Positions 46,646 to 59,678 of a stretch of DNA of 64,000 nucleotides are shown in pieces. Every line of letters starts with the position of its first letter. The first letter of the stretch is position 1. Where the stretch lies: assembly GCF_006345805.1 (NCBI RefSeq), contig NC_043009.1:23808001-23872000 (forward strand). The letters run 5' to 3'. Under the pieces are notes generated by a model. The model searched no databases. It saw only the letters and a program-made list of their open reading frames with translations, and was not told the origin of the DNA. The DNA is from Octopus sinensis. Its lineage: Eukaryota. Both the position numbers and the translations under genes were made by a program.

Positions 46646-46653
46646 TATATAAA
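46646..46653 (+). promoter_or_regulatory. TATA box of the plus-strand secreted precursor gene
   Basis: tatataaa(tag) lies in unique sequence about 89 nt upstream of ATG 46735, which is in the context tcaaccATGa. Confidence 0.65.
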
Positions 46654-46734
46654 TAGAGAGACGGAACATTTTGAACTGGAGTTGTCTCAAAGACCAAACT
46701 GACGAAGGTTACAGACAGTGACAAGGCATCAACC

Positions 46735-46825
46735 ATGAAGTCTGTTACAGTTGCATACGTCCTCTTTGTGATGCTGTCTTGTTTGACAATAGCATATTCT
46801 TATGTTCTGAGGGAATTGGCAAAAA
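46735..46825 (+). CDS. First coding exon with signal peptide: MKSVTVAYVLFVMLSCLTIAYS|YVLRELAK
   Basis: Basic n-region, hydrophobic core, A-Y-S cleavage motif, consensus donor |gtaagt at 46826 (phase 1), upstream TATA box. Confidence 0.8.
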
Positions 46826-46949
46826 GTAAGTATTGTCTTTTAATATATGCATTCATATTAGAAAATATGTATTTTATGTATATTTATACACACACACACA
46901 CACACACACACACACAAAAACACACGCACACAAACACACACACATATAT

Positions 46950-47258
46950 CAATGGCTCAGTGGTTAGGGCAGCGGACTCACGGTCAGAGGATCGCGGTTT
47001 CGCTTCCCAGACCGGGCGTTGTGCGTGTTTTTTGAGCGAAAACACCTAAAGCTCCACGACGCTCCCGCAGGGTGTGGTGCCGACCCCTGTTGTACTCTTT
47101 CGCCCCAACTTTCTCTCACTCTTTCTTCCTGTTTCTTGAGTAACGCTGCGATGGACTGGCGTCCCGTCCAGCTGGGGGGAACACATACGCCCCAGAAACC
47201 GGGAAACCGGGCCCATGAGCCTGGCTAGGCTTGAAAAGGGCGCATCAATAAATGAATA
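46950..47258 (+). mobile_element. SINE family D
   Basis: Matches 11009-11327. Confidence 0.9.
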
Positions 47259-47282
47259 ATATATATATATATATATACATAT

Positions 47283-47614
47283 TCAGATGCACAAGATCTC
47301 TTTGATTGTGTCGAGAACGATAAAAACATTTTGAAAACTTTGCATGGGCCTCTAAGCAGGTATCGCCCAGCTTTTGTCAAAATTTGATGCAGCTTCTCTG
47401 CTCAACTTTCCAGTCCATGGTCACTGCAACGATCACACGCAACACACATTGCTTCCAAGCATTGCTGTAAACGGCGAAGGGGAGCTAGAACGCTAAAACT
47501 TACTACTTGTGCACTGCAGAGAGTTCAAGATCAATCTGTGCCAAGCGGCTTTACTCTCTGTGATTTAGTTCCGTTATTATGGCAGTAGTCCGGATACTTA
47601 TTGATCAGGCCACG
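47283..47614 (-). mobile_element. Third, truncated copy of the two-left-end mariner derivative
   Basis: Same QDLFDCVEND.NILKT / inverted N-terminus junction at about 47343; TIR ending at 47614 followed by TA. Confidence 0.85.
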
Positions 47615-48259
47615 TATGTATACCTGTGTGTGTGTACATATATGCATATAAAAATGTATATATGTATGTATATATATATATATATATATGTATTTATATA
47701 TACGTATATATATATATATTATATATATTATATATATATAATACATATATATATATATATAAAAGATATATACATATATATATATACACACATATATATA
47801 TATATATTATATATTATATATATATATATGTATGGACCATGGTACCACAAAATCTGACTTCAAAAGGATTTAGATAATCCTATCAGGTGGTGCTATTAAG
47901 TTAGACATGACCTGGAGCAATCTATACATATATGTATATATATACATGTATGTATATATATATATATACATATATGTATATATATACATGTATGTATATA
48001 TATATACATATATGTATATATAAACATGTATGTATATATATATATATATATATATATATAATATATATATATATATGTTTATATATATTAATGTATATAT
48101 AGATATGTATGTATATCTTCTATCTTTTATCACTTATATTTTACGGGTTTCAGCCAGAGGCTGAGGCCATGCTGATGCACTGCCTTTACTGCATCCGGGG
48201 ATTTATATATATATATATATATATATATATATATATATATATATATATATATATATATG

Positions 48260-48672
48260 CATATGTTTACTCTCTTTTGCTCTTTTCCTTGCTTCAGTCA
48301 TTTGACTTCGGCCATGCTGGAGCACCGCCTTTAGTCGAGCAACTCGACCCCGGAACTTATTCTTTGTAAGCCCAGTACTTATTCTATCGGTCTCTTTTGC
48401 CGAACCGCTAAGTGACGGCGACATAAACACACCAGCATCAGTTGTCAAGCAACGCTAGGGGGACAAACACAAACCCACAAACACACACGCACACACATAT
48501 ATATATATATACATATATACGACGGGCTTCTTTCAGTTTCCCTCTACCAAATCCACTCACAAGGCTTTGGTCGGCCCGAGGCTATAGTAGAAGACACTTG
48601 GCCAAGGTACCACGCAGTGGGACTGAACCCGGAACCATGTGGTTGGTAAGCAAGCTACTTACCACACAGCCA
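48260..48672 (-). mobile_element. SINE family A
   Basis: Reverse copy, near full length. Confidence 0.92.
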
Positions 48673-48959
48673 GTATATATATATATATATTATATATATA
48701 TATACACACACACACACACACACATATATATATATATATATATATTATATATATATATATATATATACATATATACATATATATGTATGTATGTATATAT
48801 AGGTCACTCGTATCATTATCGAGCCTGGAGCTAACCGTGGTCTATCCATAGCATTTATCCGATACATTTTGGGTCTTCCTGACACCAATACTTTTCATAC
48901 CTCGATATATATATATATATATATATATATATATTATATATATATATATAAATTTACAT

Positions 48960-56678: not shown

Positions 56679-57110
56679 TATTGTTATATTTCGGAATAGC
56701 CATTTTGCCAGTTTAGCCAATAAAAACACACGCACTATATATTTGGTGTTACTTTGCTTCAGTGTTATTTAGTTTTTACATTAATCTTAATCCTATTTCG
56801 GCCAGAGTTCTTTCGTCACACTCCTGTGACCGCACCAGTGGTCCTTTGTTTTCTTCTTTCTTATTTGTGTCTCTCTTTACTAACCGTCAGAAAAATGGCT
56901 GACGGTTAGTAAGGAGAGACACAAATAAGAAAGAAGAAAACAAAGGACCACTGATGCGGTCACAGGAGTGTGACGAAAGAACTCTGGCCGAAATAAGATT
57001 AAGATTAATGTAAAAAATATATAACACTGAAGCAAAGTAACATCAAATATATAGTGCGTGTGATTTTATTGGCTAAACTGGCAAAATGGCCATTCCGAAA
57101 TATAACAATA
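56679..57110. repeat. Fold-back P1: ~212-bp inverted arms, 8-bp spacer aaaaatgg (56891-56898)
   Basis: The arms are near-perfect reverse complements. Confidence 0.95.
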
Positions 57111-57548
57111 TATATATATATTATATAATTTTAATGTTTATTTAATTTAGTCATTTTTTGAATAATATTCATTATAGTATATTTGAATTTTTTCTATATG
57201 ATATGGATAATGTATATTATACATTATGAAATTTGATTTAGTATTTCTAAATTGAATTTTCGCTGTAAGTTTGGAATTATATTCCCTATTATTATTATTA
57301 TTATTATTATTATTATTATTATTATTATTATTATTATTATTATTATCATTATCATTATTATTATTATTATATTATTATTATTATTATTATTATTATTATT
57401 ATTATTATTATTATCATTATTATTATATATAGATATATATAGTTTATGAGAAATAATGGTGTCAATAAGACCCAAAGGTGTCAGGTAATACTGAGTAAGT
57501 GCTATGGAGAGACCATAGTTAGGCTCCAGGTTCGGTGATTATACAAAT

Positions 57549-57953
57549 AAGGAGTCCAACGTAGGTCATATATCAGCATGTGTACATATAAAACATTTTT
57601 AGAATGAGATAAAAATCCAAGGCTGTGAAAGATTTTAGATCATTTATAAATAGAAGGTCTTACTGCTGTTTCCAGGATATTTATTATATCCCTTCATCGG
57701 AGACGGTGTGAGAAAATGGTTTAGCAATAGTTAATTTAGATAAGATATGAAATAGAGAGTGAAGTGGAGGAATGAAAAGAGTTGTAATTTTCTCACACCG
57801 TCTCCGATGAAGGGATAGATAAAATATCCCGGAAACAGCTGTAAGAGATATTTATAAACGTTCTAAAATCTTTCACAGTCTTGGATTTTTATCTCATTCT
57901 GAAATTTTTTTTATATATACACATGCTGATATATGATCTACGTTGGACTCCTT
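57549..57953. repeat. Fold-back P2: ~168-bp arms, ~69-bp spacer, with a CCGATGA hammerhead motif in each arm
   Basis: Plus-strand motif at 57800-57848 and its mirror at about 57655-57704. The spacer is the reverse complement of pseudo-LTR sequence seen at 10440-10500. Confidence 0.92.
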
Positions 57954-58163
57954 CTGAGAATTAATATATATATATATATATATATATATATATATATATA
58001 TATATATATTGAAGTAGATAAATGAATTATCTTATTACGGATAATTCAAATGATAACCGATACTTGGGTAGCAAAAATCACAACAGAAAGAGCACGGTTG
58101 AAGTTACGACCATGGGGTATAAAATCCGTGCCTTAGTGCGGAAATTTGAAGTTTTATATATTA

Positions 58164-58597
58164 AGTATAGTAAAGAATGGAGCTGAACGAAGATTTAACC
58201 AAATTCCTTTATTTTATTTTCGACATATGTTTCGAAGTCTGCAAAGTCCCTAACTCCGATTGAATAAGGAGTCCATTTTGCAGCTTTCTCTTCAGGAAAA
58301 TCCAGGAACTTAATTCTCCAACAAAATGCACAACAAGCTTTTCGACAAACGCTCACGAGGAGCCCATGAAATTAATGACACAAAATGTCTATCTATATGC
58401 GTTGACGCCAGACTGGGTGAAAGCAGAAGAGATTGTCCGTTGAGATAGTTCAAGGTCAGAATCCGGTTGGCAGAAGTGGGGTACATGGACTCCTTATTCA
58501 ATCGGAATTAGGGACTTTGCAGACTTCGAAACATATGTCGAAAATAAAATAAAGGAATTTGGTTAAATCTTCGTTCAGCTCCATTCTTTACTATACT
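58164..58597. repeat. Fold-back P3: ~113-bp arms (58164-58276, 58485-58597)
   Basis: Inverted arms read directly from the sequence. Confidence 0.93.
58216..58301 (-). ncRNA. Type I hammerhead ribozyme motif with an intact core and extended stem II
   Basis: The minus strand reads attttc-CTGAAGA-gaaagctgcaaa...tttgcagacttc-GAA-ACATATGT-C-gaaaat: 6-bp stem I, palindromic stem III, GUC site. Confidence 0.75.
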
Positions 58598-58695
58598 ATA
58601 TATATATATATATATATATATATATATATATATATATATATATATATATATATATATTATATATATATATATATATATATATATTATATATATAT

Positions 58696-59078
58696 AAAAT
58701 TAATCAAAGGACGTACTAGGTATGTCAACCTGCTTGAAATAACAGTCAAAACTCTTATTAAATCGCCAAAAATACATCGATGAAAACTACAAAAATCAAA
58801 CGAAGGTAAAATCAGACTAAGACAATCTACTAACATACATTTAAGTATTTGGACTCACGCCGACCGGTTTCTGCATTGGTAAAATAAAACCTTAGCTTCT
58901 TCAGCACGTGTCGGCGTGAGTCCAAATACTTAAATGTATGTTAGTAGATTGTCTTAGTCTGATTTTACCTTCGTTTGATTTCTGTAGTTTTCATCGATGT
59001 ATTTTTGGCGATTTAATAAGAGTTTTTACTGTTATTTCAAGCAGGTTGACATACCTAGTATGTCCTTTGATTAATTTT
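58696..59078. repeat. Fold-back P4: ~169-bp arms; the 45-bp spacer holds a minus-strand hammerhead-like core
   Basis: Arms 58696-58864 and 58910-59078; the minus strand reads CTGAAGA...GAA-ACCGGT-C at 58862-58904. Confidence 0.93.
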
Positions 59079-59507
59079 GATCCCTCGGCTATTTAATGCT
59101 ATTTTTTGGCCTGCTATCGCCTGTGTCATTGATTCTGTTACTATCATTTTTAAAATTGTTACATTGGATAATAATAGAATTAATGACACCTTCGTAAATT
59201 GATTATATATATATATATATATATATAATATATATATATATATATATATATATATATATATATATATATCTACACGAAGGATTCTTTCAGTTTCCGTCCA
59301 CCAAATCCTCTCATACATGGTCCGGGTCTATAGTGAAAGACACTTGCCCAACATGTTGAGCACTGAGACTGAACCCCAGAATACAGGTTTGGGAAGCAAA
59401 CTTCCTAACCACTCAGCCATGACTTTGTGTTTTCATATATTGTTTGTCAGTAATTTTTTGCAATCATACTTGTGAAAAAACAAATCATCTTTAACAATTT
59501 CTTACAG

Positions 59508-59678
59508 ATTTGACAAATACCAATGATAATGTTGCGGCAATGAAAATGGTAAAATCTGAGAATGATGACAGAAATGCCAGGAATGCCAATTTGACTGGTT
59601 CGTTATCAATACGGCAGGGTCCTTGTAAAGTCCTGGTCAATATGATTACCTGTCGCCTCATTGTCGGAGACAACGAAT
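59508..59678 (+). CDS. Second coding exon (171 nt) of the plus-strand precursor: (N)LTNTNDNVAAMKMVKSENDDRNARNANLTGSLSIRQGPCKVLVNMITCRLIVGDNE
   Basis: Acceptor tttaacaatttcttacag|, donor |gtaagt, open phase 1-1 frame that joins 46825 in frame, unique sequence. Confidence 0.8.

Follow-up and report, generated by a model that had tools for sequence, protein, structure and literature searches.

The 64,000-nucleotide (nt) stretch of Octopus sinensis DNA analysed here, hereafter the window (assembly GCF_006345805.1, contig NC_043009.1, forward-strand positions 23,808,001 to 23,872,000), contains a TATA box, a start codon and two short coding exons separated by a long intron, with a third exon near its right-hand end. 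We assign the interval 46646-59678, with a rough probability of 0.85, to the gene LOC115218617, of which it contains the promoter and the first two exons with intron 1 between them; exon 3 also lies in the window and the remainder of the gene lies past its end. The feature is the start of an ordinary, already annotated, uncharacterised gene and is not newly found. Its parts are given below in window positions, where L001 is the O. sinensis locus sequence from CM016871.1; L002, used further on, is the Octopus bimaculoides locus from CM046613.1.

46646..46656 (+): TATA box TATATAAATAG, read directly, 89 nt 5' of the ATG
46676..46734 (+): putative 5' untranslated region, deduced from TATA spacing, with the start placed ~30 nt after the TATA box
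46735..46825 (+): coding part of exon 1, 91 nt, MKSVTVAYVLFVMLSCLTIAYSYVLRELAK plus one base, ending in phase 1
46826..59507 (+): intron 1, 12,682 nt, GTAAGT...TTACAG, with many microsatellites and short interspersed nuclear elements (SINEs)
59508..59678 (+): exon 2, 171 nt, phase 1 at both ends, residues 31-87
59679..63416 (+): intron 2, 3,738 nt, GTAAGT...AACCAG, mostly simple repeats
63417..63488 (+): exon 3, 72 nt, phase 1 at both ends, coding for residues 88-111 (FRTLTFLRNDRFFNVIHINGKLLA) and supplying base 1 of the Arg112 codon
63489..64000 (+): first part of intron 3, the rest lying past the window end
from window-equivalent 66132, L001 29398 (+): start of exon 4, 2,132 nt past the window end, residues 112-234 in the RefSeq model

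Identity of the gene

The spliced translation of exons 1 and 2 (87 residues) is identical to the N-terminus of XP_036364445.1, the RefSeq "uncharacterized protein LOC115218617" of O. sinensis (238 amino acids, aa; UniRef100_A0A7E6FAW8). Exon 1 by itself accounts for residues 1-30, and the three exons in the window translate to residues 1-111. LOC115218617 is located on CM016871.1 of assembly GCA_006345805.1. The whole window corresponds by offset to CM016871.1:23,808,001-23,872,000, and the portion compared (window 36735-64000, against CM016871.1:23844735 onward) shows 0 mismatches. Searched exhaustively by phmmer, a set of 1.84 billion representative proteins yields two matches to the exon 2 peptide, both from Octopus: XP_036364445.1 (238 aa, E = 1.5e-27, aligned residues 32-87) and a 289-aa protein of O. 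bimaculoides (80% identical, E = 1.3e-19, aligned residues 32-86). Both matches start at residue 32, exactly the position predicted by the splice between exons 1 and 2. No relative outside Octopus is found with exon 2 (exhaustive search), with full-length XP_036364445.1 or with an N-terminal profile. Pfam gives nothing above threshold, the only hit being DUF6805 at E of about 0.1, the PDB gives no match by sequence or by profile, and a literature search on peptide strings, accessions, gene IDs and DDR48 in octopus returned no paper that mentions the gene. We infer an uncharacterised, genus-restricted, secreted protein.

No ATG intervenes between the TATA box and 46735, and the start codon (46735-46737, context caaccATGa) is the first ATG 3' of the TATA box; the donor GTAAGT at 46826 directly follows exon 1. 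The N-terminus consists of MKS, a 17-residue hydrophobic core and A-Y-S, and passes a crude hydropathy rule and the -3/-1 rule; as a putative signal peptide it would likely be cut after AYS22. Intron 1 holds 16 tandem-repeat arrays detected by Tandem Repeats Finder, ~2.1 kilobases (kb) or 16% of its length. Exon 2 is entered through the acceptor tttcttacag/AT and left through a GTAAGT donor at 59679; it encodes (N)LTNTNDNVAAMKMVKSENDDRNARNANLTGSLSIRQGPCKVLVNMITCRLIVGDNE, with two N-x-T sequons (N31 and N58) kept between species and the cysteines Cys70 and Cys79. Within the window, exon 1 and exon 2 are each present in a single copy. An original prediction, made from the window sequence before any database search, had proposed most of this arrangement. 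Its TATA box and ATG are in place, are used by XP_036364445.1 and are kept in O. bimaculoides; its signal-type start agrees with the hydrophobic, signal-peptide-like N-terminus, judged by the crude rule, of which 29/30 aa are kept in O. bimaculoides. The 12.7-kb repeat-filled intron is present, its junction 46825/59508 and the phase-1 donor at 59678 are likewise used by XP_036364445.1 and conserved in O. bimaculoides, and the sequence after SLSIR is QGPCKVLVNMITCRLIVGDNE, as quoted there. From raw cephalopod sequence, the first exons were correctly recovered with their TATA box, ATG, signal-peptide-like start and phase-1 splice sites.

The third exon had been expected probably beyond 64000. 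It lies at 63417-63488, between the acceptor ttttttcaaccag and the donor GCAC/GTAAGT: after ...GDNE, XP_036364445.1 reads FRTLTFLRNDRFFNVIHINGKLLARK, which matches the exon 3 translation exactly, and the exon is conserved in O. bimaculoides. Position 63417 had already been listed as an acceptor candidate before homology was known; the first reading overlooked a 72-nt exon in view. We also considered exon 2 as a terminal exon, read through to ...GDNECK and a stop at 59684-59686, with AATAAA-like motifs just 3'. This is rejected because exon 3 is conserved and present in both annotations, and because the in-frame TAA belongs to the donor GTAAGTAA. An extra exon in intron 1, at 51372/51421-51703, was rejected for its incompatible phase and low-complexity translation.

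Statistics on the window sequence are indecisive, and the question of whether the gene is real is settled by homology. The open frame of exon 2 spans 64 codons, in a window that holds 489 stop-free stretches of at least 57 codons. By a simple splice-site matrix, both donors are among the best 42-43 of 3,253 plus-strand GT sites and the exon 2 acceptor is among the best 79 of 3,222 AG sites. Exon-like combinations of acceptor, open reading frame (ORF) and donor of at least equal strength number 10 in the window, against 1.7 ± 1.3 in Markov-2 simulations. Among 12 signal-peptide-like ATG ORFs on both strands, only exon 1 combines a strong in-frame donor with a correctly placed TATA box that no further ATG separates from its start codon, by criteria chosen after the candidate had been seen. 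The sequence-only statistics are suggestive for exon 1, and not for exon 2. A chance combination of TATA, ATG, hydrophobic ORF and splice-like sites in AT-rich, repeat-rich DNA, with no gene at all, would fit the unremarkable ORF length and splice-site strength within the window, as well as the absence of matches when the 87-residue spliced translation was run through a word-index protein search. Against it, three exons, their phases, their splice sites and the TATA box recur in a second species without indels and with a ratio of non-synonymous to synonymous substitution rates (dN/dS) of 0.32, and two independent RefSeq annotations use the exons; as far as computation shows, the chance explanation appears already refuted, and we give it a negligible probability. 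The empty search was a false negative, since a protein 100% identical to the 87-residue query is in the collection searched. A later N-terminal profile search missed the 85%-identical O. bimaculoides orthologue, and the exhaustive HMMER search found both proteins. Negative results from the index are therefore not readable as absence.

Conservation between two Octopus species and the Arg66-Gln67 site

The orthologue in O. bimaculoides is LOC106876298 (L002, on CM046613.1), with the isoforms XP_014780279.1, XP_014780281.1, XP_052828275.1 and XP_052828276.1 and the former name 'stress protein DDR48-like'. The two genes agree in exon sizes, phases, splice sites, TATA box and downstream neighbour, a minus-strand gene for a 200-aa product that is found in both species, and residues 23-164 are 85% identical. 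The O. bimaculoides exons measure 91, 171 and 72 nt, the same sizes as in O. sinensis, each then followed by GTAAGT. The TATA sequence ATATAAATAGAGAGACGG is identical, and the stretch from TATA box to ATG is ~90% identical, compared with 78% over the whole 300 nt upstream. Exon 1 is identical at 85/91 nt and 29/30 aa (dN/dS 0.09), and exon 2 at 151/171 nt with no indel (dN/dS 0.31). Exon 3 and its splice sites are conserved, the split Arg codon changing synonymously from C/GA to A/GA. The four exons are 93%, 88%, 93% and 91% identical without indels; the intron flanks are 70-90% identical with indels. The introns themselves are much shorter in O. bimaculoides (6,937 nt versus 12,682 nt for intron 1, and 700 nt versus 3,738 nt for intron 2). 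The 164 codons compared carry 19 synonymous and 24 non-synonymous changes (dN/dS 0.32), by which moderate purifying selection on the gene between the two species is shown. Taken together, the codon and exon comparisons are good evidence that the gene is genuine, codes for protein and is moderately constrained.

The conserved region also bears on the proposal that the locus encodes a small prohormone. According to this proposal, the precursor is cut after Arg66 and Gln67 is cyclised, releasing a pyroglutamyl (pGlu) peptide, pGlu-GPCKVLVNMITC..., whose end lies in a short terminal exon. The signal-type N-terminus and the Gln directly after Arg are what such a precursor would have, SLSIRQGPCKVL is identical in both Octopus species, and a loop could be closed between the two cysteines, which are spaced eight residues apart. 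Published rules for monobasic sites ask for a basic residue at P4, P6 or P8 and for no cysteine nearby, and P8-P1 here read L-T-G-S-L-S-I-R, with Leu, Gly and Leu at P4, P6 and P8, none of them basic, and with Cys at P4'; by these rules Arg66 is a poor cleavage site. Since the next basic pair, RK(K), comes at residues 112-114, a product would be no shorter than 45 residues. The frame does not end in a short exon: exons 3 and 4 extend it by 150 residues or more. As annotated, the protein is 238 residues long, whereas the frame in the genome suggests ~2,400.

Nor does conservation single out the proposed peptide. A bioactive peptide would be more conserved than the spacer before it, and the opposite pattern is seen, which argues against a pGlu peptide: residues 67-87 carry 5/21 changes between the species (V74G, I77V, R80L, V83A and E87K; 76% conserved, 16/21), and the "propeptide" at residues 32-66 carries 6/35 (83% conserved, 29/35). 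Both low-confidence AlphaFold2 models run beta strands through the Arg66 site, which is weak evidence in the same direction. We consider a free pGlu peptide very improbable. The mature pQGPC... peptide of the original prediction over-interpreted a single Arg-Gln as a processing site. Judged by its sequence context, the QGPCKVLVNMITCRL segment is an internal part of a conserved region and not a free peptide. Four cysteines (C70, C79, C144 and C161) are conserved between the species, and together with the N31 and N58 sequons they point to a single glycosylated, extracellular region spanning residues 23-164.

A tandem array beyond the window and the fate of the tail

The main interest of the gene lies outside the window, in a coding-looking array that is an intron in the O. 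sinensis model and an assembly gap in O. bimaculoides. The RefSeq model ends exon 4 at L001 29766 (TCTA/GTAGTT) and adds a 14-nt last exon, ...ttccag/AAAAAATATTGTAA, which ends at L001 36674. The exon 4 frame has no stop at the annotated donor and continues into a 48-nt tandem array of 6.9 kb (L001 29767-36660, window-equivalent 66501-73394), the intron 4 of RefSeq. There are 131 recognisable units, 64 encoding exactly SDHGYYGGDDVERKVR and 29 encoding SDNGYYGGDDVERKVR, with the 16-residue consensus SD[HN]GYYGGDDVE-RKVR. Arg occupies both P4 and P1 in 120/131 units, and 111 of them read RKVR, with Ser next. The protein can be divided into a hydrophobic signal-type N-terminus, a ~140-residue conserved region and the tandem array of 16-residue units.

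The reading frame of the array is broken into five open segments (351, 194, 706, 139 and 939 codons). The breaks between them are one-base losses in GG, AAA, TT or AA runs (for example GGAG-TGAT, GGAA-GTAAG and GG-TATTAT), and single-base homopolymer deletion is a typical error of long-read consensus; if the array is coding, the four to seven frame breaks look like deletions of this kind. In both species an in-frame stop closes the array at the homologous place, and it is to this stop that the O. bimaculoides models run, through 8-10 units. On these grounds we lean towards the array being really coding, which would give an exon 4 of ~7.1 kb and a secreted protein of ~2,400 residues. The public 238-aa protein would then be a truncated model, and both species' public models are probably badly truncated. 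Three O. bimaculoides RefSeq isoforms, of 273, 289 and 305 aa, are set apart from one another by entire 16-residue units, a pattern suggestive of an alignment artefact where the repeat is collapsed.

It is rather unlikely that the 238-aa RefSeq model is literally correct, the array being a true intron, a satellite that expanded within the gene, and the encoded protein being small and secreted, with two units and a KKIL end. The annotated intron does have GT...AG ends (TCTA/GTAGTT ... TTCCAG/AA), the assembly does show frame breaks in the array, and the units display no synonymous excess. Yet several units contain the same weak donor, the frame breaks resemble homopolymer deletion errors, and in O. 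bimaculoides the models make no use of the orthologous CCAG acceptor: their translation covers 8-10 units and ends at the in-frame stop. False introns within tandem arrays are a known product of spliced alignment, which further counts against the annotated intron.

If the tail is translated, its fate can be considered from the unit boundaries. The protein would enter the secretory pathway; its presumably disordered tail would be cut by furin-type convertases at the R-x-V-R/S motif that ends almost every unit, and a peptide of 12-15 residues, acidic and rich in Tyr/Gly, would be released in many copies. The motif is kept while the peptide body varies: the O. bimaculoides unit is S-Y-D-G-S-Y-G-G-D-N-V-E-R-N-V-R, with R-x-V-R preserved (RKVR versus RNVR) and 5/16 unit positions different, a weak argument from two species only. 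We regard furin-type cutting of the tail into many acidic Tyr/Gly peptides as possible, at somewhat less than an even chance.

A slightly more doubtful course is that the tail is left uncut and serves whole as a structural, adhesive or matrix polymer outside the cell, in which acidic DDVE and basic RKVR blocks and the Gly/Tyr motifs would drive self-assembly. More than 130 near-identical units with a Gly/Tyr/Asp-rich composition are consistent with this, and such features are found in mollusc matrix and adhesive proteins. Automatic naming once matched the protein to the repeat protein DDR48, and the N-terminal cysteine-containing region could anchor or multimerise the chain. By contrast, the searches that were run reveal no homology to any known structural protein family, and the Arg residues at P4 and P1 of the unit boundaries are kept across species while their neighbours change.

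Taken to its full extent, the cleavage hypothesis makes LOC115218617 an Octopus-restricted polyprotein of ~2,400 residues, whose giant fourth exon is mis-annotated as an intron and whose >130 copies of SD[HN]GYYGGDDVE are each released by furin-type cutting. We consider this complete version unlikely. Several points weigh against the overall reading of the gene, with its coding tail and the cleavage of that tail. The signal peptide is judged by the crude rule only, and the 17-residue core could be an uncleaved anchor. The protein records of both species are computational RefSeq models. AlphaFold2 gives a mean pLDDT (predicted local distance difference test) of 35.7 for the full length and 36.8 for the N-terminal region, both unusable. 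R-x-V-R is the minimal furin motif only, with Val at P2 and Glu at P5. RefSeq makes the array an intron in O. sinensis, which counts against its presence in the messenger RNA, and in O. bimaculoides the array is mostly a gap of 5,957 N (L002 about 20460-26465). Among unit variants there are 9 synonymous and 26 non-synonymous types (26% versus 22% expected); with no synonymous excess, translation of the whole array is not demonstrated. If the tail is translated and cut at R-x-V-R, LOC115218617 would be an extreme multi-copy peptide precursor. Should the complete version be true, the copy number would be unusually high for an animal secreted-peptide precursor and might reflect a lineage-specific signalling, defence or pheromone system.

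Surrounding elements and known systems

The window also contains elements other than the gene. Upstream of the promoter, a single-copy non-coding block at 39255-40104 is ~93% identical to L002 4432-5276, compared with 70-88% for most other non-coding flanks, and its substitutions show no codon periodicity. The block, ~6.6 kb 5' of the TATA box, may have a regulatory role. A remnant of a long interspersed nuclear element (LINE)-type retrotransposon lies in a G+C-richer stretch at 19531-24673 (+), with a weak endonuclease/exonuclease/phosphatase match at 21659-22303 (E 0.003) and a reverse transcriptase match at 22291-23133 (RVT_1, E 1.6e-12). The region 28000-29900 (+) is G+C-rich (0.555) and strongly C-skewed, with frame-shifted ORFs. 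Within it, 29703-29780 translates to LYIGQTGRRLADRFAEHLRDIHLRHD, which resembles the GIY-YIG endonuclease motif of Penelope-like retroelements; the ORFs scanned in 28000-29900 gave no Pfam match, and those ORFs do not contain the LYIGQTGRRLADRFAEHLRDIHLRHD motif in its frame. A Mos1/mariner-type transposase fragment (HTH_48, E 2.7e-06) is found at 36401-37562 (-).

Copies of a tRNA-like SINE of ~180 nt, mutually 86-90% identical, occur at 5739-5916 (-), 11016-11196 (+), 46945-47130 (+) and 55762-55872 (-). One of these copies lies 120 nt into intron 1, immediately behind a (CA)n tract. ARAGORN called no tRNA gene in the window. Intron 2 carries a perfect three-copy 28-nt tandem repeat, CTTCCAATCAGTTAAGATCAGAAGCCAT, at 61504-61587, and a 356-nt (TCA)n tract at 62801-63156 that gives rise to long spurious ORFs on both strands.

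Several known systems offer a comparison for the gene itself. Pyroglutamyl peptides include TRH and the GnRH-type and allatostatin-C-type peptides. The LOC115218617 segment resembles them in that Gln would be N-terminal if the chain were cut after the preceding Arg, and it resembles the allatostatin-C type in having a cysteine pair nearby. It differs in having no recognised cleavage context, no C-terminal processing site and no sequence similarity, and in sitting inside a longer conserved region.

DDR48 is a yeast stress protein built of tandem short units rich in Ser/Tyr/Gly/Asp/Asn. The likeness is in composition only, and no search made here yields a sequence relationship to LOC115218617; DDR48 is not known to have a signal peptide or the N-terminal cysteine region. 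Membership of the DDR48 family is rejected, as the searches returned only Octopus proteins and no Pfam family above threshold. The DDR48 name has been dropped in the current RefSeq record, having reflected repeat composition only.

The orthologue LOC106876298 likewise has 16-residue units, here ending in R-N-V-R. Its unit sequence differs (SYDGSYGGDNVERNVR), most of its array is an assembly gap, and it is without the 35-residue linker TFKRNALLKNIKRMD...GKGR present in the O. sinensis protein. Within O. sinensis, the RefSeq model of LOC115218617 skips the array and ends in KKIL, whereas the genomic frame suggests a much longer product.

The longer product invites comparison with multi-copy polyproteins. 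Molluscan FMRFamide-type precursors and fungal Kex2-processed repeat proteins carry multiple peptide copies, roughly 5-40, cut at the basic motifs KR or RR. LOC115218617 is like them in its signal-type N-terminus, its non-repeat N-terminal region and its tandem units that each end in a basic motif matching a convertase site. It differs in having R-x-V-R in place of KR or RR, no Gly for amidation and no homology, and its array holds >100 copies where these precursors have roughly 5-40.

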